Below, piece after piece: positions 12,919 through 53,058 of a DNA stretch of 64,000 nt. The notes below the pieces were generated by a model that saw only the letters and a program-made list of their open reading frames with translations, made no database searches and had not been told where the DNA came from. Both the position numbers and the translations under genes were made by a program. The stretch's first letter is position 1. Every line of letters starts with the position of its first letter. The stretch spans positions 124,001 through 188,000 of IMG/VR virus record IMGVR_UViG_3300049048_000052. One strand, written 5' to 3'.

Positions 12919-13943
12919 TTAATACATTTGGAGAAGAGTATGTCGGAAGTCTGGTTGGCTATAGGTATTACTATGTGGTTATGTGTAGGTATAGGAGCTA
13001 TGTTCCTTAACCTCTTTAAGATTAGTATAAAAGAGTTTATGGGAGTGAAGACTGATGCGGTCCATCTTACGTTAATGTCTTTATCTATCATTGCTCTGGG
13101 CCCAATAGGTCTAGCCATTGTTATTTGGGGGTAATATGAAGGATCCAAAACAGAATCCTGGTCAGGCCGCTGCTGCGGTCGCTATTGTTGTAGGCTTGAT
13201 TGCAGGGGGCGCAGTTATAAGGGACGAGATCGTTAGGAACGTCAATACTCAGGAGCAAAAGCATGACCGATAAGAAAGAAGAGAAGGATACTGGTAAAGG
13301 TTCAAGTAATAAACCGATAACTAAGGAAAGCGATAAACCAAACGGCGGATCACAATATATCGGCGGTATACCTGGCCTGGGGGATAAATGAAGTTAGTGT
13401 CTATTTGTCTAGGGTTCCTAGCAGTAGTTACGGGACTGTGTTTTATATCTATTCAATCCAACCTACCCTGCGATTCGTGGGTGATGGGGATGGCTATGAC
13501 TTACCTATTATCATTGGGAGGTATATCCTTCCTCTTATACACTGTTTGATTAATGAAGGGGCCTCAATTAAGGGGCCCATAAAAGGAGAAAGATGATTGG
13601 AACAATGTGGAGAAATAGAGTCAGTGGTATACCCCATTGGGTGGTAGGTCATATGATTATAAATCCTATAAGATTAGATACCCACACTAATACTCACGGT
13701 ACGTGGATCATATTAGAACATAGGGCAAGTGGACCTAAGGAACTATATGTTTCTGAGCATGAGCTATCTGAGCTCTATAATATGGAAGGCAATATATGAT
13801 AATGGAATTCTGGATGCAGCCTGTTATACAGGAGTTTGCTACTGTAATATTGCTTTCTATCGTGGCCCCTATATTGATATCATTGCTATTCTATTGGTTG
13901 TATAAGGATTAATTGATTGGTTACTTAGTAAGGAATCAATATA

Positions 13944-14273
13944 ATGGCAGTTATCCAATTAGATAATGGTATTCACTTTGAGGGTACCAATGAGGCTGTG
14001 CTAATGGTTGCAGAGGCAGTTAAGCCAGTTAAGCCTTTAGCCACTGACCTGAAGAAGCATGAGGATTATGTACACATGTCCCATGGCGGCCCTATTAAAG
14101 TCGGTGCTATGTCTAAGCAACATATGGCTAACCTTATAAAGAAGGACATAGAGACCTTGGTTAAGTTCTCTAGTCTTAGAGATCTGTGCGATATAGCAGA
14201 GCTATTAGGCGGACGTCTTGATAGAAGGGCTATAGAGTCTATCATTAAGGTAGCTAGGGCTCGTAATTATTGA
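13944..14273 (+). CDS. hypothetical protein (paralog of next gene)
   Basis: GIHFEGTNEAV...M..QHMANLI shared pattern. Confidence 0.65.
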   Translation: MAVIQLDNGIHFEGTNEAVLMVAEAVKPVKPLATDLKKHEDYVHMSHGGPIKVGAMSKQHMANLIKKDIETLVKFSSLRDLCDIAELLGGRLDRRAIESIIKVARARNY

Positions 14274-14305
14274 TTGATATATATATATATAAATAGGAAG
14301 TACTT

Positions 14306-14611: not shown

Positions 14612-14674
14612 TATTATATATTGACTGATTACTTAATAGGTGACTAGGAGGCCAATGGCCCCTTTCTTATAACT

Positions 14675-15109
14675 ATGACTATTGAAATACAAGTACACAA
14701 TAGAGAGACTATTGTTAAGGCAGTAACAGAGTTGCCCAAGGGCAACCGTACGATGGTTATCAGTATAACCAATGAGCAAGACTGGCCTCGACTACCTCCT
14801 GTGAAGCTAGAGGAGTACGTTATGCTCAGCTTCTATGATAATGATGGGCCTGATAGTTGTACACCATGTATGACCAGGGGACAGGCTAAGAGAGTAGTAT
14901 CTACCTTTATGGCATGTAAGGATAAGCTAACCCATCTGCTAATCAATTGTGATGCTGGAATATCCCGAAGCGCAGGTATGGCAGAAGCTTTCTCGCTACT
15001 TGTGTATGGTAAGGACTATTACTATACATGTGATAGAATCCCCGCCCCTAATGCTTGGGTGAAGAGGCTGACATTGGAGGCCGGGGGTCTTGCTCATGGC
15101 TACCAGTGA
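14675..15109 (+). CDS. protein-tyrosine/dual-specificity phosphatase-like protein
   Basis: CX5R loop NCDAGISRSAG; ISIT, LSFYD and PN motifs. Confidence 0.8.
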   Translation: MTIEIQVHNRETIVKAVTELPKGNRTMVISITNEQDWPRLPPVKLEEYVMLSFYDNDGPDSCTPCMTRGQAKRVVSTFMACKDKLTHLLINCDAGISRSAGMAEAFSLLVYGKDYYYTCDRIPAPNAWVKRLTLEAGGLAHGYQ

Positions 15110-15674: not shown

Positions 15675-15683
15675 TTCCAACTT

Positions 15684-15718
15684 TATTGACTTTATTGATT
15701 GGTCCGCTTTTATTGATT
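15684..15718 (+). promoter_or_regulatory. tandem TATTGAYT motifs (recurrent upstream element)
   Basis: copies at 15684, 15693 and 15711; same motif upstream of many + strand genes. Confidence 0.55.
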
Positions 15719-15756
15719 GTGAAAACAAACACAAACAAAAAGGATCAATTTCTATC

Positions 15757-16206
15757 ATGGCTAACGTAATCACTGCACAAACCCCCATCCGTATCACCAT
15801 TGCTACCCCCGGTCGTAATGGTAATATCAGTGGGGATATTGTATCTCGTGTAGTAATGGCAAGCGTACTGGGCTTCCCCAAAGAGGGTTTGGAAGCCCCA
15901 GTATTCCCTCAACAAGAGGTAGCATCTATCAATGGTAATGAGAAGCTGACGGCCGCTGATAAGCAGTCCCGTGTTAACGCTATCATTCTTGAGTACACTG
16001 AAGCCCAGAATGCATTCCTGCATTCTGGTGGCGTCAATGCATTGGATATGGTGCCCTCTGCTGTTGTGGATTATCTGGTAGCACATGAAGGCTTCTCTGC
16101 TAATGGTAGAGATGAAAAGCCTTATGTTCGTGCTACGGACTTGGTTGCTAACTTCGTTGAAGATGGCACCGCTGTCCAAGTTTATCCTAGCGCAACCTGG
16201 GGTTAA
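15757..16206 (+). CDS. putative ubiquitin-like (MoaD/ThiS-type beta-grasp) protein with insertion
   Basis: C-terminus VEDGTAVQVYPSATWG* matches the register of MoaD-type L.DGD.V.F.PPV.GG*; first gene of the operon containing the E1. Confidence 0.6.
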   Translation: MANVITAQTPIRITIATPGRNGNISGDIVSRVVMASVLGFPKEGLEAPVFPQQEVASINGNEKLTAADKQSRVNAIILEYTEAQNAFLHSGGVNALDMVPSAVVDYLVAHEGFSANGRDEKPYVRATDLVANFVEDGTAVQVYPSATWG

Positions 16207-16258
16207 TACCTAGGCATATTGATTTTATTGATTGTCCCTATTAGTTTGAATTAGGACA

Positions 16259-17746
16259 ATGGAAGTGGATAGAGTTAGTTACAGACAATACAGTCCTGCA
16301 CTGAGAAGATTAAACCTCAGGGATGGTAAATACTATCTGGACTATGGGTATGATGATATAGAAGTAAAGCTGCAGCCCTTATCTGAGTTAGGTAAGAAGC
16401 TACTGGGTGATAATACTTCTAGAGTTATAGATCGTAGATTACTCAATAAGTATGACTTTGATGATGGGCACTGGAGGATCAACGGTAGATTCTGTAAGAC
16501 TCCTGTGGTACCAGTCTATCTAGACTCGTTACTGAATAACTCTCACCCTCTAATGACCTTGGGTGATGATGTGGCAGGTATTGTAGAGCTAGGGGAGAAG
16601 CTCTTAGCTGACTTTCAGCCCCCTCAGATCAATAATGAGGGCTACACTAAGATACTTACTCAGGGTACACATGATAGATCAGGTCACTTCTACCCTCGTC
16701 TGACTCAGGTTACAATCAATGGCAAGGGGGGAATAGATGATAAGACTGAGGAACTCTACCGTCTTATCAGTAGTTACTTGGAGATCCTTGATGTCTCTGG
16801 AGTGGCAGTTAGGGATAGTGCTATCTACACATCCGTAGTCCATCAGAAACTTAAGGAGGCTAAGGTCACCATAAGAAACGCTAGGGATGAGCATGCTGGA
16901 GGTGGTCGCCCTGATATCCTGTTTGCGGATACGCTAAGTGTTCCCAAGCTTACGGAGGAAGAGGCAGCAAAGCTAATCATGAACGCACGTAGAGAGAATA
17001 GGTTGAGAGGTTACATAACTGATAAACCTACACTCTCTGAGTTGGAAGATAACACTGAGATGCTAGCTAAGTTCCAGGAAGCTACTAAGTCTATTAAGGG
17101 CTTAGTTATTAGCTATCTCCGTAAGCGTGATCCCATTGTATTCACCGCAGGTAGTAACTTCGGGGTTTCACCTGAGGCTTGGAATATGGATCTTGAGGAG
17201 AAGGATAGAATGGGACCCCTAACCGCTATCATAGATCATGAGGGTAATATAGGTTGGGGTAGCCCTCATAAAGAGGGTAACCGTATGATCTCCAACAATG
17301 GTCCTATTGTTCACTATATGGGCCCTAGCTGGTGTGTTAGATTCCATTATGTGAATGATGAGGGTGTTACCATCGATGTGCTTCAGGATAATGAGATATT
17401 CTGCGTCACAGGTCAGATGTATGCAGATGCTATTAGACCTTACCGGCCAGACCTGCTAGAGTTATGGCAACCAGATCCTGAGGCTATCTACTTTGTATGT
17501 AGCTACTGGTGCCAAAGAAGTGGGGCCTTTGCTAAGCATAACGGTATCCTGGACTTCTATAATGTCTTCCGTATGCGTTGGACATTGGCAGAATGGATTA
17601 CATATTCTCTAGTGCCTAAGTGTGTAAACATGGGTATTAACATACCTGGTTACAATGAGAAAGCCATGGTTGATGGACAGACTCAGTCCGCCAGACTTGC
17701 AGCTATCAAGGATTATCTAACTAAGGCTAATGCCCTTAAAAGTTAA
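16259..17746 (+). CDS. hypothetical protein in Ubl/E1 operon (E2-like C-terminus possible)
   Basis: 495 aa; Cys/Trp-rich C-terminal region; position between Ubl and E1. Confidence 0.7.
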   Translation: MEVDRVSYRQYSPALRRLNLRDGKYYLDYGYDDIEVKLQPLSELGKKLLGDNTSRVIDRRLLNKYDFDDGHWRINGRFCKTPVVPVYLDSLLNNSHPLMTLGDDVAGIVELGEKLLADFQPPQINNEGYTKILTQGTHDRSGHFYPRLTQVTINGKGGIDDKTEELYRLISSYLEILDVSGVAVRDSAIYTSVVHQKLKEAKVTIRNARDEHAGGGRPDILFADTLSVPKLTEEEAAKLIMNARRENRLRGYITDKPTLSELEDNTEMLAKFQEATKSIKGLVISYLRKRDPIVFTAGSNFGVSPEAWNMDLEEKDRMGPLTAIIDHEGNIGWGSPHKEGNRMISNNGPIVHYMGPSWCVRFHYVNDEGVTIDVLQDNEIFCVTGQMYADAIRPYRPDLLELWQPDPEAIYFVCSYWCQRSGAFAKHNGILDFYNVFRMRWTLAEWITYSLVPKCVNMGINIPGYNEKAMVDGQTQSARLAAIKDYLTKANALKS

Positions 17747-17758
17747 CTAGGAAATAGA

Positions 17759-18463
17759 ATGAATCTAATATTAGTTGGGGCTGGGCAATTGGGCTCAGCC
17801 TTTATCTTGGAATTGCTTAAACGGATATCGGCTACAGGTTTCACTGCTATCACTATACATATCTATGATGATGATATCGTAGAGGATAGGAATACCCATG
17901 TACAGTATTTCACCCCCAGGGATCGAGAGAAGCCCAAGGCTGTGGTTATGGCTGACCTGGCTGCAGAGTATGGTATAAAGGCCATCGCCCATGTTGAGCG
18001 CTTTGCCTTCCCAGATCTACAAGCTATGGAGAACGTGGTAGTGGTTGATGCTGTAGACAATGTCAGCACCAGGTATGCTCTGTGGAACTATGCGGTAACA
18101 CAGAATGTACCCCTGATGACTATGGGTAATAGCCTGAAGGGTAATGGCTTTGTCACATGGACCTGTGCTGCCTTTGATCACAACACCTGGGGCCTAGGTG
18201 CAGGTAGCTACACTGCAATCATGAATGCAATCGAGAAAGAAAAGGAACCTGAAGAGAAGGTACCCCCTTGTGAACTAACTAAGTATAGAGGTCTAGCCCT
18301 TAATACTGCGTTGGCCGCATGTGAGGCATTCCTTATCTATTGGGGTCAGGATGTCATGATTAGAATAGACCCTGAGGTATATCAAGCTGGCTTCGTCACT
18401 GAGTGGCGTATCAAGCCCGAGGGTTATGAGTTGGTTCACATTAGTTATATGGAAGGTAAGTAG
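17759..18463 (+). CDS. ThiF/E1-like adenylating enzyme
   Basis: VGAGQLGS, YDDDIVEDRN..Q, KPKA, DAVDN..TR, MGN; PPC (Cys171) candidate thioester Cys; no CxxC Zn motifs. Confidence 0.9.
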   Translation: MNLILVGAGQLGSAFILELLKRISATGFTAITIHIYDDDIVEDRNTHVQYFTPRDREKPKAVVMADLAAEYGIKAIAHVERFAFPDLQAMENVVVVDAVDNVSTRYALWNYAVTQNVPLMTMGNSLKGNGFVTWTCAAFDHNTWGLGAGSYTAIMNAIEKEKEPEEKVPPCELTKYRGLALNTALAACEAFLIYWGQDVMIRIDPEVYQAGFVTEWRIKPEGYELVHISYMEGK

Positions 18464-19798
18464 ATGGTTTATTATCAAGCAGCAGCAAGTCTAACTCCTA
18501 AACTCTATGTAGAGGTTGTAGGTGGTATCAATTGGCATATCACATCAGCCACTCAGTACCTTATCAATATTGTTAAGGAGCATATGGATTGCTTCGAGGG
18601 TATTGCTGATGGGGTAAAGTATGTTAAGGCCTTGATCCCGCCAGAAAGAGCGGCCTACACATCATCAACACCACAGGTCCTTACTTGTGGTCTAGTGGCA
18701 ACCTCAGCCTACATGAAACACAATCTGGGGATGGAAACAGATAACCATGATGAGTACTGGTACAAGACTCATCCTCTATGTGTTGCATCTGGTTTACCTC
18801 AGCAACATACGCTGAGTGTTATCCATCATCTGGTCAACCCTTATGGCCTGGGTATCTCTAAGGTATTCCATCGACGTGGAGTATCTATGAGCCCTGATGC
18901 TATTAAGTGGATGACTTATCTACCTCCTAATCCTATGGGCTATGGTAATCGTACTACTAGCAATAAGGAATATGCGGAGCTATGTGGCTTTGATCCTAAA
19001 GTTGTAGAGTCGGAGTACTCTACGGAGTTCGTGGATAAGCCTAAGGGTCCTGTTATCCTGTTCAATGCAGTGGCAGCTACTACATCCTTTGCTAGTGGAG
19101 GGGGCCACGCTAGTTATGCAGGTCCTAGAGCTAAATTCCATAGTTGGGAGATGGCCATCCGACTTGATAGACTGGAGAGGATCAACTATGCAGTTGAACC
19201 TGAGATCGTTGAGGTTGAGCCTAAGCTAAATCAAGTCCTAGATGTATGGAAGTGCTTGACCAAGGATGGTGCAACTCTTGAGAGCAAGAAGCCTCAGGGT
19301 ACTACCTTTGTTGTGCCTCCTATGCAGAAGAGTCTATTGCCTCTATTACCCTCTAATAATAGTCTTATTATCAGTAAGGGAGAGTTTGAGGACTTCAAGA
19401 GATATAATCCTAACCGGATTACGGATGATGACTATAAGGAAGTATTGAAGCATCCTGTAAATAAGGAGAGGGTAGAAAGCTTCCTTAGTATGTTGATGAA
19501 TGAAGTCGATAAACTAGGTGAGACATCTGACATTCTGGTGGCGGCGGGTGGTGTTAAACTAAAGGATCTATCTCAGAAGATAGGCGCTGTCCAATGTATC
19601 ACAGACTTGAAGAATAAGTTATGTGCTATAGCCAAGGGTGTTACTGAGCTTACCTTATCAGATATCATCTATTTCAACCGGCAGTTGGTCGAGGATAAGA
19701 CCTATGATATTATCTGGGCACTTGGTGACGAGATGCTAGATAACATGTTGGATGAATGGATTCTGAACCTGTATGGTGTTAACGACTATACTAAATGA
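18464..19798 (+). CDS. hypothetical protein in Ubl/E1 operon
   Basis: 444 aa, start abuts the E1 stop codon. Confidence 0.7.
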   Translation: MVYYQAAASLTPKLYVEVVGGINWHITSATQYLINIVKEHMDCFEGIADGVKYVKALIPPERAAYTSSTPQVLTCGLVATSAYMKHNLGMETDNHDEYWYKTHPLCVASGLPQQHTLSVIHHLVNPYGLGISKVFHRRGVSMSPDAIKWMTYLPPNPMGYGNRTTSNKEYAELCGFDPKVVESEYSTEFVDKPKGPVILFNAVAATTSFASGGGHASYAGPRAKFHSWEMAIRLDRLERINYAVEPEIVEVEPKLNQVLDVWKCLTKDGATLESKKPQGTTFVVPPMQKSLLPLLPSNNSLIISKGEFEDFKRYNPNRITDDDYKEVLKHPVNKERVESFLSMLMNEVDKLGETSDILVAAGGVKLKDLSQKIGAVQCITDLKNKLCAIAKGVTELTLSDIIYFNRQLVEDKTYDIIWALGDEMLDNMLDEWILNLYGVNDYTK

Positions 19799-22958: not shown

Positions 22959-24077
22959 ATGGACAGTGAAATAGTAAGCAAGAGGACAATATTGTTAGGC
23001 CTTGGGGGTAGTCATTCCTATGGTCTAAATGTAGAAGGTTCTGATATAGATGGTAAGGGTATATGTGTAGGGCTAAAGGAGCATTACCTAGGCTTCACTA
23101 CATTTGAACAGAAGGACGCAGGTTGGGATATAAGTAAGACGTTATGGAAGGATCATCCTATTAAGATAGGTGAGGACCTAGTTGTATATGAACTACGTAA
23201 GTACCTGCAGTTGGCTGCGGATGCTAATCCTAATATACTAGAACTCCTATGGTTGAAACCAGAGCAGTATCTATTACAGACAGAGGTAGGTGCTGAGCTG
23301 ATAAAGCATAGGCAACTGTTTATGACTAGTAAGTGTAAATGGACCTTTAGTGGTTATGCCCATAGCCAATTAAAGAAGATACAGGCTCACCGTAAGTGGT
23401 TATTGGATCCACCGGATAGGAGACCTGAGCCACAGGACTTTGGTCTTGGTCTGGGTAATAAAGATCCTATGACCAAGGAACAACTACATGCCTTCTATGA
23501 GTTTCTATATATCCTGGTTAGAGATGCTATCGAATATGCTCAACCAGCTGAGGACTTATATAACATATTAATTGCTCGTATAGATTACAAGGGTCTATTC
23601 AAACAACATCCACTATCTATAGGGGTACTGCCCTATGTACAATCCTTAACTAGATCCTCTGATGACTTTATAAGTCTACTGCATGCTAGTCAGGAGTATA
23701 GAGGAGCTCTGACCCGTTGGGATGCTTATCAGAATTGGAAGCTTAATCGTAACAAGAAGAGGGCAGCTACTGAGGCCGCTATTGGTTATGACAGCAAACA
23801 TGGTATGCATCTAGTAAGACTGTTGTCTATGGGTATTGAGATCCTAGAGACAGGGGAGCTTATAGTGGATAGAGGCATAGCTGGGGATAGAGATGATCTT
23901 ATGGCCATACGTAACTGCGAGTGGCCCTATGAGAAGCTAATGGACTATGTTAGTCTCTTAGAGCAAAGAGTAGAGGATGCGTTTAAGCAAACTAGACTTC
24001 CTAGATCCTGTGACCGAACTAAGGTCAATGAGTTGTGTATTGAGTTAGTTGAGATAATGGGTTGGTATGACTATTAG
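22959..24077 (+). CDS. Pol-beta superfamily nucleotidyltransferase (YcgL/RlaP-like)
   Basis: GSHSYGL...SDIDGKGI, NPNILELL, FSGYA..Q, GYDSKHGMHLVRLL. Confidence 0.85.
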   Translation: MDSEIVSKRTILLGLGGSHSYGLNVEGSDIDGKGICVGLKEHYLGFTTFEQKDAGWDISKTLWKDHPIKIGEDLVVYELRKYLQLAADANPNILELLWLKPEQYLLQTEVGAELIKHRQLFMTSKCKWTFSGYAHSQLKKIQAHRKWLLDPPDRRPEPQDFGLGLGNKDPMTKEQLHAFYEFLYILVRDAIEYAQPAEDLYNILIARIDYKGLFKQHPLSIGVLPYVQSLTRSSDDFISLLHASQEYRGALTRWDAYQNWKLNRNKKRAATEAAIGYDSKHGMHLVRLLSMGIEILETGELIVDRGIAGDRDDLMAIRNCEWPYEKLMDYVSLLEQRVEDAFKQTRLPRSCDRTKVNELCIELVEIMGWYDY

Positions 24078-24600: not shown

Positions 24601-26688
24601 ATGAAACTAGCTATACCCACAGTAAATATAGAAAGATCGGACGTTACTACTGAGGTGGTAATGGGTATTGATGATGCTAATAAGCACGTCATTATGAACT
24701 TATTGAGATCAGAGCTGTACTCTGACCCTATAGGATCCTTTGTCAGAGAGATTATTAGTAACGCTGTTGATGCACATACTCGATCTAAACAGGATCGGCC
24801 TGTAGAGGTAACATTACCTAATCCATTTGCCCCTGAGTTAGTAGTTAGGGACTATGGATACTCTATGACTATAAAGGTTATAGAACTTATATATTCTCAG
24901 TTAGGTACCTCTACTAAAAGAGATAGTAATGAGGAGTTAGGATGCTTTGGTATTGGCGCAGCCAGTCCTCTATCCTATGCTAGTAACTTTAGTATAGAAA
25001 CTATTACATTAGAAGATAATAGGTTTATTAAGAGACTTTGGGTACAGTATGTAGATGAAAGTCTCATCGGTAAGCTGAGTCTACTTGGTGAGGAGGAAGT
25101 TGAGGGCCCTACAGGTACCACTATCAAAATACCTATAGAGAAGGATGATTATACAACTGTGTCTAACTCGGTTGTGTACTTTACTCAGTTCCTAAGGGAT
25201 AGGGTTAGTATTACCAATATTGGTAATAGGAGCTATAAGGAGTATACCTACTATCATGAACAGGATGACTGGAAGTGGATAGGCAGTCATGTTGGTAGCC
25301 CCTATCAGATGGATCGGGTTGCTGATAACTCACTGGTCATCATGGGCGGCATACCATATCCTATAAACACTAGCTCGTTAGGTTTAAAGGATAGTAAGAT
25401 GGTAACCCTAATGAAGTCGGGTCTACATCTACATGCCCCATTAGGTTCTGTTACTCTAACACCTAGTAGGGAGAATCTTAAATATAGCGATAAGACTAAA
25501 CAGTATTTAGCTAATAAGCTTATTGAGATATCTGCTGAATTAACTAAGGTAGCCGAACGTTCTGTAGCGGACTGTAAGTATATACATACAGCAGCTAAGA
25601 CTTATAGTGAGTTGCCTCAAGCATTGAAGGCTGTCGTGAATTGTAGCCAATGGAGGGGTCATGTCCTGAAGTCAGGTATAAACCTACCTGAGGGATTAAG
25701 GGCTGAGTCTTTTGGTGTTGAGAATGCTTATACTAATCAGGGCTATAAGGAAGTTGTTAAGTCTAAGAAGTTAGCTAGTGTAGAGCTATTACGTGATACC
25801 ACCTTCTGGATTAATGATCTAGGAGGTAAGATAGCTAACAAGGAGATCGTCACCAAATATGTCATAGAGAAGAAAGGGTCCCTTGTTGTATTCACAACCC
25901 TAGAACCTAGTGATGAAATAACTGAGTTCCTTAAGTTGTTCGATACAAGTCTCATGAGCACCTTATATCCTAACTTTGTTAAGACAAAGAATAGAGCATT
26001 AAGAGGTCATGTCGATGGATATACCTTTGACCCTGATCTACACAGATCTAATACAAGAGGGATACATGCTAACTTATTACCTACTAAGATACCAAGGGAT
26101 AAGGGCGGTATATATCTAGTTGTGGATGGGGGTATCCGCTGTACTCATGCTGTTAGTATGGGGGCCTGGTATTACGGTCAACAACCTGCAGAACTAGATA
26201 GACTAACTAAGACCTTAGGTTGTGAGGTAAAGGGTATGCCTGTCTTTAATAAGTCTGTCCTACAGAAACTAGATGAGACATGGTTGACCTTTCAGCAGGC
26301 AGTAGATAACTATGTGGATGCTCTACCTAATAAGGAGCAACTCATGTCTAACCTATTGGATACTGACTATTATTATAATAAGCAATACTCACAGCTCTAT
26401 AAGCAGAGTAAGGACTTTCTAGAAGGGTTAGATCCTAAGTCAATGTTAATTACTTATATGGTAACGTCCTCTACGAAAGAGGTTAAGATGCGGGATGATA
26501 AGACCAGTCCTTATCATATGATAGCCAGCTGTACTCAATATCATACCTATAAATTAGAAGGTAAGTCAGAGTTAAAGGATTTATATACAGCCTGCAGATC
26601 AAGGTACCCAATGTTAGAACTTGGAACCTATGTAACTCCTGCTGATAAGTTAGTAGACTATATAAAGCTAATGGATAGCCTGGCCTAA
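24601..26688 (+). CDS. rIIA: rIIA-like protein with GHKL ATPase domain
   Basis: LYSDPIGSFVREIISNAVDAH, RDYG, STKRDSN...GCFGIG, GTTIKIP, PSRENLKY. Confidence 0.85.
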   Translation: MKLAIPTVNIERSDVTTEVVMGIDDANKHVIMNLLRSELYSDPIGSFVREIISNAVDAHTRSKQDRPVEVTLPNPFAPELVVRDYGYSMTIKVIELIYSQLGTSTKRDSNEELGCFGIGAASPLSYASNFSIETITLEDNRFIKRLWVQYVDESLIGKLSLLGEEEVEGPTGTTIKIPIEKDDYTTVSNSVVYFTQFLRDRVSITNIGNRSYKEYTYYHEQDDWKWIGSHVGSPYQMDRVADNSLVIMGGIPYPINTSSLGLKDSKMVTLMKSGLHLHAPLGSVTLTPSRENLKYSDKTKQYLANKLIEISAELTKVAERSVADCKYIHTAAKTYSELPQALKAVVNCSQWRGHVLKSGINLPEGLRAESFGVENAYTNQGYKEVVKSKKLASVELLRDTTFWINDLGGKIANKEIVTKYVIEKKGSLVVFTTLEPSDEITEFLKLFDTSLMSTLYPNFVKTKNRALRGHVDGYTFDPDLHRSNTRGIHANLLPTKIPRDKGGIYLVVDGGIRCTHAVSMGAWYYGQQPAELDRLTKTLGCEVKGMPVFNKSVLQKLDETWLTFQQAVDNYVDALPNKEQLMSNLLDTDYYYNKQYSQLYKQSKDFLEGLDPKSMLITYMVTSSTKEVKMRDDKTSPYHMIASCTQYHTYKLEGKSELKDLYTACRSRYPMLELGTYVTPADKLVDYIKLMDSLA

Positions 26689-26731
26689 CTTAATTCATTT
26701 CTATTTATTCATTGATTCGTACTTTAGAATC

Positions 26732-44968: not shown

Positions 44969-45041
44969 CCTATATTGACTGGTATTAAAGACTAATGAGG
45001 GAGTCGAGAGGCTCCCTTTTATATACATATAGGAATCAATT

Positions 45042-45585: not shown

Positions 45586-48500
45586 ATGAAACTGATAAAA
45601 GGTTCTGAGATCGACTTCTATTACGTAACCTCTGATGTAGGACCTCTAGTAGAAGCGATCCAGGATCTAGACCTTGTCTTGCTTGATACCGAGACTTATC
45701 CATTAAGTGAGAAGTTCGGTCATACGGCTAATGGTCTAGATCCTCATACATCTAAGATAAGACTTATACAAATTGGTTGGCAGGGTTGCAATATACCTTA
45801 TGTAGTCGATGTTAAAAAGGTAAAGAATATCCAGCCTCTATTAGATCAACTAATGAGGGAGGACCTAAAGAAACTTATACATAATGCTCAGTTCGACCTG
45901 AGACATATATATTCTAACTTTGGTATATGGCTACCTAACGTGTATTGCAGTATGACTGCCATGAAGACCCTATCGGTCTCCACTGGTTGGCAAGTAGGTA
46001 GAATGAGAGGTCATTCACTCAGAAGTCTAGCAAGAGACTTCTGTGATAGACATCTGGATAAGACTGAACAGACTAGTGATTGGTCTAAGGATACACTGGA
46101 TGCTGAGCAGTTAGAGTATGCCGCTATGGATGTAGCACCTTTCATAGTTGATGCTTTCCTATCTATCAAAGAGGCCTTATGTGGACCCATACCATTAGGT
46201 TATGATGAGCCTAAACCTTTTGAGATAGATCAGGGGGCTGTTGTACCCATTGCTAAGATTGAGTATAGGGGCAATTATGTCAGCAGGGAAACATTGGAGA
46301 TCCTACTGAAGGAGTCTACTAGGTTAGCTGAGTCTCATAAACAGAAGCTATGCCAAGTACTAGACTTCCCTATTGAGAGGGAGATAGTAATGGGTGATGA
46401 TGGTCAACTACAGGTTAATACTGTGGTACCTGATAAAGTAGCTAAGTTACTCAATAATAATAAGGGTCTCGTATCACATATAAATAAACTCTTAGAGGGT
46501 TCTGGATTAACTTTAACAAATCTACAGAAAGAAGAGTTAGAGAACCGTTTAGAATTACTGTCTGAGAGTAAAGCATCAGAAGCTGATGAAGAATCTGAGT
46601 CTTCTGATGAGGATATAGATTATGACTATGATTATGGTATCAGTAGTATTAAAGAACTACTACTGTACAAGAAGTATGTAAAGTTGGTCTCAGATGTCAG
46701 TAAGCATATAGATGCTATTAATGTAGTAACAGGTAATATACATACTGACTTCCATATTATCAATGCGGCTACAGGTCGTATGGCATCCTCTTCTAATATG
46801 AATGGGATACGGGTAAACCTACAGCAGGTTAACAAATTTAGTACTAGGGCCCAGGTGCCTATTAGGTTACTAGGGGGAGAGCTGGATGAGCTAGCTGATG
46901 TTAACTTATCTCTTAGAGGCGCCTTCCAAAGTCCTGAAGGACATAGCATGGCAATATGCTTAGCTGGAGATACTCTCGTTTATACGACTAAAGGTTTAGT
47001 TGAGATAAAGGATATCCAGGCTGGGGATCAGGTCATCACTGATGGAGGTACAGCATCTGTATATCATACGAAGAAGACTGAGGGACGCCGTGTCTGGAAG
47101 CTTAAGACTAAACTGGGCTATGAGATAGAGACGACTCCAGGTCACAGATTTATGACTGTGAATGAGGAGGGTGACCTAGACTTCAAGGAGTTAAGACATC
47201 TTAAACCTAATGATTTTATAGTACTGCACAGGAATGAACATAGCTCCTATGAGGTAGACGGTGAACTCATAACTGAGTATGAGGCTACCCAGATAGGTCT
47301 CAACATGAAAGGTAGGAATAATGATAAGCAGGTACCCCCTGTTATTATGAGTGCCTCATCTAAGATTCAAGCTGCTTTCTTAAGGGGCCTCTATACAAAT
47401 GAGGGCTTCCTAGAAATGAACAGTAAGATCAGATATGTTGCCTTATCTACGGGTTCCGAAGTTTACTGTAAGCAGATACAGACCATGCTACTGAGTCTGG
47501 GTATTATATCTAGAAGGACTAGTAGAAGATATGAATGTGAGTATGGATATTATAGTGACTATTGGCTGACAATAGCTGAGATCGATCAGGTCAACCTATT
47601 TCGTAATCTCATAGGCTTCCTTGACGAAGCTAAGACAGAAGCATTAGATAGAAACTGTGATAAGCCTAAGGTATTCAATCGTAGCCATAACATACCCTTC
47701 TCTTTTGTTAAGAAGAGGATAGGTAAATCAGGTAAGCCTGGTATGGCGGACCTTAAACGTAATGGTAATAGATTTGGCACTACTACAAGGTATGCGGTTA
47801 ACAGAGCATACAGACAGGTACCTCATCTATTTGATCCCTCTATGCAACCTATTATAGATGGAACCCTTGCCTTTGATAGGGTGGTATCAATAGTAGATGA
47901 GGGTAAAGTCTGTGATGTTTATGATATTACTGTACCTCGTCTGAGAAGATTCAGTGCTAACGGCATAATAGTTCACAACTGTGACTATAGTAGTCAGGAG
48001 CTAATGATTGCGGCGGCCCTGTCTAATGATAGGGTAATGCTTGATGCTTTCTTTACGCAAAGGGATAATCCAACTCTTATCGATCCTGAAGGTAATGAAT
48101 ACGCTAACCCTTTGGTGGATCTACATACAGTAGCAGCCATGTCCCTATTCCCTCATCTCAATGAGGTGCCCTTGTGGAAGCTTGAGAAGGCTGCCAAGGA
48201 GATAGGTCCTGGAGGTCAGAAGTATCGAGATCTTGCCAAAGTGTTCAATTTTTCCATAATTTATGGTGCTTCTGCCCAGTCCTTAGCTCCTGGTCTTAAG
48301 TGTTCAGTTGAGGAGGCTGAGAGGTTCCTTGCGGCTTACTTTGGTAAGTTTAGAGGCTTAAAGGCATGGCTTGATAGGTCAGCTAAGTTAGCTAAGAAAC
48401 AGAAGTGGGTTACTAGTGCGACTGGCCGTAAGCTCTTCTGCTTTGAGTCTAACAATAAGGGCAGTGATAATGCAGTGGAACGTAAGGGTCCTAATGCATT

Positions 48501-48870
48501 AGTCCAAGGTCTTGCATCTGACATGATGAAGATGGCATTTAGCAGGGCCGTACCTAGGATAGAAAGACTTAATGATAAGAGAAGGTCATTAGATCCAGGA
48601 TGTAAGATAGGTTGGATACAGGCTATCGTACATGATGAGATTGTGGCTATCGTTCCAGGTACTCCTAAGTTAATTGATATAGTTAAAGCTGGTAATAAAG
48701 ACGGTACAGATAAGCTTATATATGAATTCCCAGAGATAGCTATGGAGTATGCTGAGTTAATCAGTGGCACCATGGAGGAGGTTGAGAGTGAATTACTATC
48801 ACCTCTAATTGGTCAGGACTTCCCCGCTAAGGCAGACCCAGGTCTAGGCTTTAGTTGGGCTGATAAGTAA
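45586..48870 (+). CDS. polA: family A DNA polymerase (3'-5' exo + pol) containing an intein
   Basis: DTET, HNAQFD, YAAMD exo motifs; TGRMAS, DYSSQEL, R..AK.FNFSIIYG, VHDE. Confidence 0.95.
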   Translation: MKLIKGSEIDFYYVTSDVGPLVEAIQDLDLVLLDTETYPLSEKFGHTANGLDPHTSKIRLIQIGWQGCNIPYVVDVKKVKNIQPLLDQLMREDLKKLIHNAQFDLRHIYSNFGIWLPNVYCSMTAMKTLSVSTGWQVGRMRGHSLRSLARDFCDRHLDKTEQTSDWSKDTLDAEQLEYAAMDVAPFIVDAFLSIKEALCGPIPLGYDEPKPFEIDQGAVVPIAKIEYRGNYVSRETLEILLKESTRLAESHKQKLCQVLDFPIEREIVMGDDGQLQVNTVVPDKVAKLLNNNKGLVSHINKLLEGSGLTLTNLQKEELENRLELLSESKASEADEESESSDEDIDYDYDYGISSIKELLLYKKYVKLVSDVSKHIDAINVVTGNIHTDFHIINAATGRMASSSNMNGIRVNLQQVNKFSTRAQVPIRLLGGELDELADVNLSLRGAFQSPEGHSMAICLAGDTLVYTTKGLVEIKDIQAGDQVITDGGTASVYHTKKTEGRRVWKLKTKLGYEIETTPGHRFMTVNEEGDLDFKELRHLKPNDFIVLHRNEHSSYEVDGELITEYEATQIGLNMKGRNNDKQVPPVIMSASSKIQAAFLRGLYTNEGFLEMNSKIRYVALSTGSEVYCKQIQTMLLSLGIISRRTSRRYECEYGYYSDYWLTIAEIDQVNLFRNLIGFLDEAKTEALDRNCDKPKVFNRSHNIPFSFVKKRIGKSGKPGMADLKRNGNRFGTTTRYAVNRAYRQVPHLFDPSMQPIIDGTLAFDRVVSIVDEGKVCDVYDITVPRLRRFSANGIIVHNCDYSSQELMIAAALSNDRVMLDAFFTQRDNPTLIDPEGNEYANPLVDLHTVAAMSLFPHLNEVPLWKLEKAAKEIGPGGQKYRDLAKVFNFSIIYGASAQSLAPGLKCSVEEAERFLAAYFGKFRGLKAWLDRSAKLAKKQKWVTSATGRKLFCFESNNKGSDNAVERKGPNALVQGLASDMMKMAFSRAVPRIERLNDKRRSLDPGCKIGWIQAIVHDEIVAIVPGTPKLIDIVKAGNKDGTDKLIYEFPEIAMEYAELISGTMEEVESELLSPLIGQDFPAKADPGLGFSWADK
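46957..47979 (+). mobile_element. intein (341 aa) with LAGLIDADG-type domain
   Basis: N-terminal CLAGDTLV, TPGHRF block B, FLRGLYTNEG, VYDITV...F.ANGIIVHN/C. Confidence 0.95.
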
Positions 48871-50316: not shown

Positions 50317-50378
50317 TAACAAAGGGCCTGCTCGGGGGGCCCACCCTATTATTGATTGGTTACCCTTAGGGAACCATT

Positions 50379-51542
50379 ATGTTATTAGTACAAGAGTATC
50401 TGTCTTCTGGCAAGTCACTAGAAGACTTATCAAATGAGTTAGGATTAAATATTAAGCATCATCCTGTCGATCCTCTAGTCATCATTGACTATGATCAGAT
50501 CAGGAGTCCTAGAAAGGATCCTATTGTGCGTGAGTGCAGAGGTCTTGTCCTAGAGAAGGATACGTGGAAGGTAGTAGCCAGATCATTCAATCGCTTCTAT
50601 AATTGGGGAGAGTTCCCTGAGGAGGAGCACCTATTTGATTGGAAGAATGCTACCTGTGATGAGAAGATAGATGGATCTATGATCATCCTCTACCATTACA
50701 ATGGAACCTGGAGAGTTAACACTAGATTCAGTTGGGCTGATAGTATAGTGGGCGATGGTCCCTATACCTGGACCCAATTGTTTGAGATAGCTATGGGTAA
50801 AACACTACAAGAAGTTGGGGATATCCTAATAGCTGAGAATAATAGGTCCTATGTATTCGAATTGGTATCTCCGTATAACAAGGTAGTCCGCTGGTACCCT
50901 AAACCTAAACTTTACCTATTAGGGGAGTTTAGGTTGGATGTGGATCACGATGAGTACCATGATGCGGGTTTAGCTTTGCATGCGGCCTTCCTTGATGTAG
51001 ATAGGCCTAATCGCTATATCCTCAATAATATAAGGGCTATCAAGAAGTACCTAAGGGAACTAGAGGCTAATGACCCAACTAATGAGGGTGTAGTCATCAA
51101 TGATGGTATTCACTATTGGAAGTTAAAGAATGAGAAGTACTTGGTCCTCCATAAGATGAGGGGCGACTCAGGTAACTTATATCATCCTAAATACTTAGTA
51201 CCCTTTATTCTTACTGGTGAGACCTATGAGCTACTCACTTACTTCCCAGAGGTAGAGGATAAGTTACTAGAGTATAAGGCTCGTATAGATAAAGAGTATG
51301 ACCTATTACAAAAGGTATGGGCTGATGCTTGTGGCATACGCTCTAGGAAAGACTTTGCTCTTGCTATCAAGGATGCTACTAGATTCAATAGTCTACTCTT
51401 TAGTCTTCGTAATGAGACCGATGTAATCCTATTCCCAGAGGAGGAACTAGGAGATAGTATGGACCGCCTAGATGAGATGTGGCGTAACTCTTTAGACTTA
51501 ATACTAAAAGTATTATTTGCTAAGGAGGTTGTTCATGTCTAA
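50379..51542 (+). CDS. RNA ligase, T4 Rnl1 family
   Basis: ECRGLVL, FNRFYN, EKIDGS, FELVSP, EGVV, KLKN. Confidence 0.9.
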   Translation: MLLVQEYLSSGKSLEDLSNELGLNIKHHPVDPLVIIDYDQIRSPRKDPIVRECRGLVLEKDTWKVVARSFNRFYNWGEFPEEEHLFDWKNATCDEKIDGSMIILYHYNGTWRVNTRFSWADSIVGDGPYTWTQLFEIAMGKTLQEVGDILIAENNRSYVFELVSPYNKVVRWYPKPKLYLLGEFRLDVDHDEYHDAGLALHAAFLDVDRPNRYILNNIRAIKKYLRELEANDPTNEGVVINDGIHYWKLKNEKYLVLHKMRGDSGNLYHPKYLVPFILTGETYELLTYFPEVEDKLLEYKARIDKEYDLLQKVWADACGIRSRKDFALAIKDATRFNSLLFSLRNETDVILFPEEELGDSMDRLDEMWRNSLDLILKVLFAKEVVHV

Positions 51543-53017: not shown

Positions 53018-53058
53018 TTATTGATTTTATTTATTGTTTACATTCAGGAACTATATGT

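Follow-up and report, generated by a model that had tools for sequence, protein, structure and literature searches.

The stretch of DNA analysed here, referred to as the window, comprises 64,000 nucleotides (bases 124001-188000) of a 251,780-bp virus genome, IMG/VR record IMGVR_UViG_3300049048_000052, which CheckV rates as complete. The phage (~252 kb) was present in one soil-metagenome DNA run only, and a search for RNA runs of it gave none. Four consecutive genes on the + strand of the window form a cassette. The first (15757..16206, +) is an open reading frame (ORF) with an ATG start that encodes a 149-aa protein with the C-terminal end ...VEDGTAVQVYPSATWG, followed by TAA. We call its product the WG protein after its last two residues, Trp148-Gly149, and the ORF itself, the protein family, a structure model and codon bias mark it as a candidate ubiquitin-like modifier. 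An earlier reading of the letters alone (the sequence-only reading) had given its position, strand, length and Trp-Gly ending exactly as they appear in the ORF list and translation. The second gene (16259..17746, +) encodes protein X (495 aa), the third (17759..18463, +) a minimal, E1-like adenylyltransferase of the ThiF family (234 aa), and the fourth (18464..19798, +) protein Y (444 aa). Each of the four is single-copy in this phage. A 144-aa antisense ORF (15745..16179, -) is probably spurious and not a gene, because it lies wholly inside the sense WG ORF, which is itself conserved across 40 relatives.

To collect relatives of the WG protein, 1.84 billion cluster representatives were searched exhaustively with HMMER (E up to 1e-3). 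This yielded 36 family members, with lengths of 130-190 aa in almost every case. When 34 sequences were aligned (mean column identity, 32%), Gly149 was the sole invariant column and Trp148 was kept in at least 90% of the sequences. Copies from further loci were added to give 40 distinct sequences, the counts resting on metagenomic gene calls. All 40 members have the Gly, preceded by Trp in 37 and by Phe in 3 and never by a second Gly (Gly-Gly, 0/40), and the consensus ending is ...V.GTAVWG. The Gly is the last residue in 23 of the 40 proteins, while 17 (~40%) carry tails of 1-37 residues after it. Twelve of these tails are one residue long (C, N, S, H, Q, I, R, A or L) and the five longer ones have 5, 7, 7, 10 and 37 residues, with no conservation among the tails. 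The sequence-only reading had proposed conservation of the terminal Gly among homologues as a check on its idea of a ubiquitin-like protein (Ubl), and this residue was kept throughout. Its remark that no processing protease is needed holds for the copy in the window, where the Gly is exposed, but not for the family with its 17 tailed members. Since the Gly is invariant whether it is terminal or stands before a disposable tail, its carboxylate appears to be the functional group, as in Ubl precursors. A conserved C-terminal Gly that is exposed, or can be exposed by trimming, characterises Ubl/E1 systems and is what the WG family has.

An aromatic residue before the Gly is also known from eukaryotic Ubls. 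Atg12 ends in ...W-G and is made with its Gly exposed, and Atg8/LC3 has ...F-G; Atg8 bears a short tail (a single Arg in yeast) that is removed by the Cys protease Atg4. A non-Gly penultimate residue therefore has Ubl precedent, and the exposed and the tailed forms both occur in the WG family. No sequence similarity to the Atg proteins was detected, however: the phage E1 is not Atg7-like, and X and Y do not match Atg3/Atg10 or Atg4. The likeness may be convergent. The WG family, with ~40 distinct proteins, carries no prior annotation. The WG protein had no match in Pfam, PHROGs, PADLOC or NCBIfam, no Pfam family recurred when every member of the WG, X and Y families was scanned, and PDB sequence and profile searches with the WG protein gave nothing meaningful. 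A word-index homologue search matched the WG protein to itself only and returned nothing for X or Y. Megablast and tblastn searches of GenBank phages with the region, the WG protein and the E1 were empty, as was a scan of viral contigs with the WG protein alone.

The sequence-only reading had likened the end of the WG protein to that of MoaD. The MoaD terminus that it gave was correct (E. coli K-12 MoaD ends in ...LTDGDEVAFFPPVTGG), and an ungapped end-to-end alignment of the two proteins gives 6 identities in 16 positions. The D-G, V, P and T matched in this way are peculiar to the WG protein of this phage and are not conserved in its own family. When the WG family was compared with E. coli MoaD using hhalign, the probability was 0.16%. 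The Pfam ThiS/MoaD model (PF02597) had no match at E up to 1 to the WG protein or any of 34 relatives; run against the six-frame translation of the phage genome it also found nothing, while 12 of 14 control genomes were matched. The MoaD-like ending is therefore not evidence of kinship, and homology of the WG protein to MoaD was rejected.

To describe the fold of the WG protein, we used a model made by AlphaFold2 with the family alignment. The model was confident, with a mean predicted local distance difference test (pLDDT) score of 91.2 and a predicted template modelling (pTM) score of 0.77. Its elements are strands at residues 10-18 and 24-34, helices at 52-60, 66-89 and 95-110, and strands at 129-134 and 139-144, with the last five residues free. 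This order is the β(2)-α-β(2) order of a β-grasp core with a helical insert of ~60 residues, and the core (β(2)-helices-β(2)) superposes on β-grasp domains. Two local predictions of the sequence-only reading agree with the model, namely the PIRITIATP stretch as the first β strand (10-18) and a helical segment of ~60 extra residues, QQEVASI...AQNAFL, which corresponds to helices 52-60 and 66-89, with 95-110 in addition. In VIA-align searches, the helical insert drew generic helix matches. The matches that span both hairpins (residues ~6-149) were all β-grasp domains: kindlin F0 (score 5.1), the NORE1A RA domain (4.8), the parkin Ubl (4.7), the PI3K-alpha ABD (4.5), ubiquitin variants (4.4), staphylococcal SSL C-domains (4.1), Protein L (3.9), SUMO (3.8) and YukD (3.6), with scores below the significance level of the tool. 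A 77-aa ESM Atlas protein aligned to the model over 69 residues with a TM score of 0.66 normalised by the target, and Foldseek returned nothing at E <0.1 from the PDB, AFDB clusters, Swiss-Prot or BFVD. The predicted-fold check thus came out in favour of a β-grasp by element order and by the nature of every hairpin-spanning match, and short of it in that no single match is significant. Because the structural match scores lie below the significance level, we grade the WG protein as likely to be a β-grasp with an insert, with which the model is consistent without proving it.

The low scores of all β-grasp matches and the empty Foldseek result speak for a different explanation, in which the WG protein is not an E1 substrate. 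It would instead be an abundant structural, DNA-associated or host-takeover protein that is co-transcribed with an unrelated ThiF module, and its aromatic-Gly end would serve folding or oligomer packing. A packing role, however, leaves unexplained why the Gly is terminal in 23 of the 40 family members yet stands before unconserved tails in the rest. The genes around the WG gene also bear on this explanation. The gene order WG-X-E1-Y, on one strand and with the WG gene first, was found in all 12 distinct loci that have enough flanking sequence. The cassettes of the window and of loci L004, L005 and L009-L012 were found through WG relatives. Those of L013-L016 and L018 were found through Y alone, with no WG reference, and all five carry a WG gene upstream. 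The 12 cassettes lie on contigs of 12 to 332 kb with differing flanking genes, and the WG proteins of different cassettes share only 21-44% identity, yet the linkage to the E1 is strict. Such strict linkage across diverged WG proteins and differing flanks argues against a chance association with the ThiF module, and we regard a WG protein that is no E1 substrate as very doubtful.

The ThiF-family E1, two genes downstream of the WG gene in 12 of 12 cassettes, is the strongest support for a Ubl and was not seen in the sequence-only reading. Its assignment rests on PF00899, profiles and invariant motifs. The protein matches PF00899 at 7.3e-14, the ThiF and PRTRC-ThiF models of NCBIfam at ~2e-10 and, weakly and in the Rossmann part only, the BilD model of PADLOC at 5e-7. 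A profile of seven E1 orthologues matched in the PDB E. coli ThiF (4e-15), UBA6 (4e-14), UBA1 (1e-13) and MoeB (3e-12), as well as TcdA, Uba4, SAE2, NAE, Cap2 (3e-6) and MccB (3e-6). The motifs present are GxGxxG (residues 7-12), DDDxVExRN..Q (37-49), K60, VDxVDN...R (96-105) and Cys171 in P-P-C-E-L. Residues G7, G9, G12, D37, D39, R44, N45, Q49, K60, D97, D100, N101, R105 and C171 are invariant over 12 orthologues. D97-x-x-D100-N101 is the Mg site, and all nucleotide- and Mg-binding motifs of ThiF/MoeB/Uba-type enzymes are kept. The WG gene is genetically linked to this E1 with its intact ATP and Mg motifs. Prediction of the E1-WG complex gave 0.01, 0.82 and 0.18 in three runs (median 0.18 against a mark of 0.32) and was used neither for nor against binding. 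The idea of an oversized Ubl with a reactive Trp-Gly end, as put forward in the sequence-only reading, is therefore upheld as regards the invariant Gly, the β-grasp-compatible model and the linked E1, and falls as regards kinship with MoaD.

The E1 also brings in the main rival explanation, a sulfur-carrier system. The WG protein would be a carrier like ThiS, MoaD or TtuB whose terminal Gly is adenylated by the E1, then converted to a thiocarboxylate, and provides sulfur for phage nucleic-acid or cofactor modification, with X and/or Y as sulfur-using enzymes. As in the ThiS/MoaD systems with ThiF/MoeB, a small E1 with the same adenylation motifs stands beside a small partner with a terminal Gly, and ThiF, MoeB and Uba4 are among the best PDB and NCBIfam matches of this minimal, 234-aa enzyme. 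Neighbouring genes of nucleotide and RNA metabolism are in keeping with such a role, including class II ribonucleotide reductase and RlaP in the window and dCMP deaminase, RNA ligase and Thg1 in related loci. The sulfur carriers CysO and QbsE also bear tails that are removed by a peptidase, and the tails in the WG family are therefore compatible with this explanation. The ThiS/MoaD carriers, however, end in Gly-Gly, have ~66-81 aa and match PF02597, whereas the WG family ends in Trp-Gly or Phe-Gly (aromatic-Gly in 40/40), has about twice their size and gives no match to the model. A sulfurtransferase partner was not recognised either. In no cassette did the E1, X or Y show a rhodanese, cysteine desulfurase, PP-loop ATPase, ThiG or MoaE domain, although the folds of X and Y leave room for a novel sulfur enzyme. 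We consider a sulfur-carrier system unlikely.

Proteins X and Y have no match in Pfam, PHROGs, PADLOC, NCBIfam or the PDB, whether searched singly or as profiles, and look-ups of their features and structures in the ESM Atlas were uninformative. The N-terminal half of X is variable, and a C-terminal core of ~210 aa (residues ~255-470) is conserved. Cys418, in the motif S-x-W-C-[EQ]-R, is the sole invariant residue over 12 X sequences. The full-length model of X was poor (pLDDT 53.8), with a core around residues 260-415 at 80-93 that is made up of a helix, a β-meander, short helices and a strand; Cys418 follows in a low-confidence loop, and then come helices. Fold searches with this model (VIA-align, Foldseek and Atlas) were dominated by its long low-confidence helix and were uninformative. 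Additional X-core paralogues were seen in L011 (9556-10314), L012 (13311-14501), L005 (3248-4111, 5334-6299 and 6292-7080) and L014 (2139-3092). The paralogue in L012 keeps S-S-W-C-Q, and those in L011, L005 and L014 are without the invariant Cys; these proteins are possibly non-catalytic variants or substrates.

In Y, an N-terminal domain of ~270 aa is conserved, followed by a variable, helical C-terminal part. Cys75 (V-x-T-C) is invariant and His215 (G-G-H-A-S-Y-x-G-P-R) is present in at least 90% of the sequences; W99-Y100, P126-Y127, N156-P157 and R222 are also conserved, and several aromatic and proline positions are invariant. A reading of the G-G-G-H-A-S-Y motif of Y as a PP-loop was discarded for lack of conservation of the Ser that precedes the glycines. 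A search of 185,579 species genomes, limited to one peptide pattern, gave no relative of Y, and a scan of viral contigs with the Y alignment gave no loci beyond those already found. In L010 a gene for an S24/S26 peptidase (signal-peptidase/LexA-like; 13312-13773) directly follows Y; none was seen in the other cassettes. From their conservation in the cassette, their invariant residues and analogy with known pathways, we infer that X could be an E2-like thioester carrier, through Cys418, and Y a Cys-His peptidase or ligase, through Cys75.

That X and Y are without a recognisable E2 or deubiquitinase (DUB) fold is also in line with an E1 that acts on the C-terminus of the WG protein itself, with no onward transfer, in the manner of MccB on microcin C7 or Cap2 on CD-NTases. 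The effector, perhaps an anti-defence factor or a toxin-like molecule, would then be the WG protein itself, modified or tethered at its C-terminus. The E1 profile matches MccB and Cap2 (both at 3e-6, as above), and the large helical insert suggests that the WG protein has a function beyond that of a tag. An invariant Cys in each of three proteins, however, fits a relay better than a single adenylation. MccB-type enzymes act on short peptides with a C-terminal Asn, and the CD-NTases belong to the nucleotidyltransferases; the WG protein resembles neither. Adenylation without transfer is in our view improbable.

The sequence-only reading had remarked on codons (GGT, CGT, GCT and ATC) like those of a highly expressed gene, and the bias proved stronger than it had stated. 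CGT makes up 5 of the 6 Arg codons of the WG gene, compared to 15% across the ORFs of the window. Of its 9 Ile codons, 6 are ATC and none is ATA, which accounts for 47% across the window ORFs; CTA and TTA codons are absent. The WG gene has the least genome-typical codon usage among the 69 ORFs of the window. The share of ATA, AGA, AGG, CTA and TTA among Ile, Arg and Leu codons is 0.043 in the WG gene compared to a genome mean of 0.557 (sd 0.154), which ranks it fourth in avoidance of these codons among the 276 ORFs of the genome. Other genes with extreme codon bias cluster at ~31-57 kb of the genome (G000:C1, loci L021 and L022), outside the window. This cluster includes a gene for a 1613-aa protein (phrog_30979), and three of its proteins (237-313 aa) end alike in ...NMM or ...DMM, two of them sharing an N-terminal LNICQR. 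The clustered genes, which we had hoped would prove to be capsid or tail genes, yielded no annotation; they possibly encode highly expressed virion proteins.

Upstream of the WG gene, three tandem copies of TTTATTGAYTG (15682..15719, +), a candidate phage promoter or regulatory element, lie 38-75 nt before the start codon. One exact copy (16224..16234, +) is found 25 nt upstream of gene X. Other sites upstream of start codons, all on the + strand, are at 13909-13919, 14266-14276, 14617-14627, 26704-26714, 44971-44981, 50348-50358 and 53026-53036. The window holds 13 matches compared to 2.7 expected (~5-fold), a number that none of 100 shuffles reached. All but one of the 13 lie on the + strand, and the matches that were compared with the ORF list stand ~20-70 nt before a start codon. 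The whole genome has 30 matches, 18 of them intergenic, while non-coding sequence is 12.7% of the genome. The motif is probably a phage element, promoter or regulatory, that serves genes of a single temporal class; no gene other than the WG gene, with its three copies, has more than one. A scan for generic sigma-70 promoters and terminators around the WG gene gave nothing above shuffles. Together, the codon bias and the promoter-like motifs suggest strong expression of the WG gene. This in turn suggests that the modifier would be made in large amounts, as a stoichiometric tag rather than a catalytic carrier, and so counts against the sulfur-carrier system. The likeness of its codon bias to that of the unannotated gene block at ~31-57 kb is a point in favour of the explanation in which the WG protein is an abundant protein but no E1 substrate.

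Collectively, these results suggest that the product of the ORF at 15757..16206 is the modifier in a so far undescribed ubiquitin-like activation system, encoded by four genes of the phage, a reading that we hold to be probable, if by no means secure. In the pathway that would follow, a peptidase removes the tail of the WG protein where one is present, and Y, with its invariant Cys75 and near-invariant His215, is the candidate. The E1 would bind the WG protein and adenylate the Gly149 carboxylate with ATP, and the aromatic residue (Trp or Phe) next to the Gly would be in keeping with a binding channel peculiar to the cassette E1. The acyl group would pass to Cys171 of the E1 as a thioester and then be relayed to Cys418 of X, with X in the role of a non-canonical E2. 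The WG protein would end as an isopeptide on a target protein of the phage or host, from which Y might also deconjugate it. Several points weigh against the activation system. The WG protein is without a sequence link to any Ubl family by Pfam, PDB profile or hhalign to MoaD. X matches no E2 family, its model is poor and fold searches with it gave nothing, and some X-core paralogues are without the Cys motif. Y matches no peptidase family, and no JAB/MPN, UBC or RING protein was recognised in the cassette. A profile of the C-terminal half of the E1, aimed at placing Cys171 relative to known catalytic cysteines, had no match in the PDB, so the assignment of Cys171 as the putative catalytic Cys is positional, and the minimal size of this E1 is also that of the enzymes of sulfur-carrier systems.

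A more far-reaching version of the activation system, which we offer tentatively as a possibility, is a complete tagging pathway in large soil and freshwater phages. It would consist of an abundant 15-kDa tag with an aromatic-Gly end, a minimal E1, the non-UBC carrier X and the new Cys-His peptidase or ligase Y, and would modify host or phage proteins during infection, for example by disarming Ubl-like defences of the host (such as Bil or CBASS Cap2) or by marking host proteins. If this is true, bacterial viruses employ ubiquitin-like conjugation for attack, and do so with enzymes whose folds are unrelated to those of known E2s and DUBs.

Prokaryotic ubiquitin-like conjugation has so far been described as host machinery, namely sulfur carriers, Bil, Bub and CBASS Cap2. 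A literature search retrieved work on Bil, Bub and CBASS Cap2 and the β-grasp surveys of 2006-2007, and found no phage-encoded Ubl/E1 cassette. In Bil (BilABCD), a bacterial antiphage system, the Ubl depends on a C-terminal Gly that is exposed, which in many of these systems requires prior trimming by a DUB (PMC10557695). Bil and the phage cassette are alike as operons of a Ubl, an E1 and further enzymes, and the match of the phage E1 to BilD is weak and partial. Bil is a host defence, whereas the WG cassette is carried by phages. Unlike in Bil, the phage E1 is without a separate CYS domain, and the phage Ubl has 149 aa, a helical insert and an aromatic-Gly end; the PADLOC models of BilA, BilB (E2) and BilC (JAB) had no match to the WG protein, X or Y. 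Bub is a diverged bacterial operon of E1, E2 and Ubl with a new peptidase family, which uses oxyester (Ser) intermediates and an E1 that is without a catalytic Cys (PMC11601596). Bub illustrates how far systems of the bacterial type can diverge from the canonical folds of E2s and DUBs. In contrast to the bacterially encoded Bub, the phage E1, X and Y each keep an invariant Cys, and no sequence similarity between the two systems was detected. Cap2 and PRTRC ThiF, both weakly matched by the phage E1, are prokaryotic E1-domain proteins that act on a protein C-terminus. Cap2, however, is an E1-E2 fusion whose substrate is a CD-NTase rather than a Ubl, and PRTRC has ParB-like and JAB-like genes; none of these partners is in the phage cassette.

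The Ubl candidate, the E1 and two conserved cysteine proteins that are without detectable relatives occur as a unit in at least 12 large phage genomes, and the cassette comprises three unannotated protein families, WG, X and Y. If the pathway conjugates proteins, phages join the users of ubiquitin-like tagging and there are two new enzyme families to characterise. The tag/E1 pair would then probably be orthogonal to known systems because of the aromatic-Gly end, and could be a possible tool; the sequence-only reading had proposed that the WG end may set the protein apart from host E1s and deconjugases. With four small genes, the system is directly testable in E. coli.

A second ORF of the phage (G000:C1:92461-92838), outside the window, encodes a 125-aa protein that ends in ...NSWG and has no match to the WG family profile; this ending is probably a coincidence. 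Just upstream of the WG gene, the gene at 14675-15109 (+) encodes a small dual-specificity-phosphatase-like protein (DSPc, 2e-4; phrog_5614, 2e-9). A DSPc-like gene is in the matching relative position in the contig of the closest relative (L002, 1904-2350), and the protein may be part of the functional neighbourhood of the WG gene. The recognisable genes of the window are typical of a large phage and include class II ribonucleotide reductase, RlaP, a family A DNA polymerase, an RNA ligase, a clamp-loader-like ATPase and a helicase. The RlaP-type nucleotidyltransferase is encoded at 22959-24077, a GHKL-ATPase protein at 24601-26688 and the T4 Rnl1-like RNA ligase at 50379-51542. The family A DNA polymerase (1094 aa; 45586-48870, +) contains an intein with a LAGLIDADG homing-endonuclease domain (residues ~457-798). 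RlaP recurs near the WG cassette in the related loci L005, L009 and L010, and this recurrence hints at a neighbourhood of genes for RNA repair or anti-defence.

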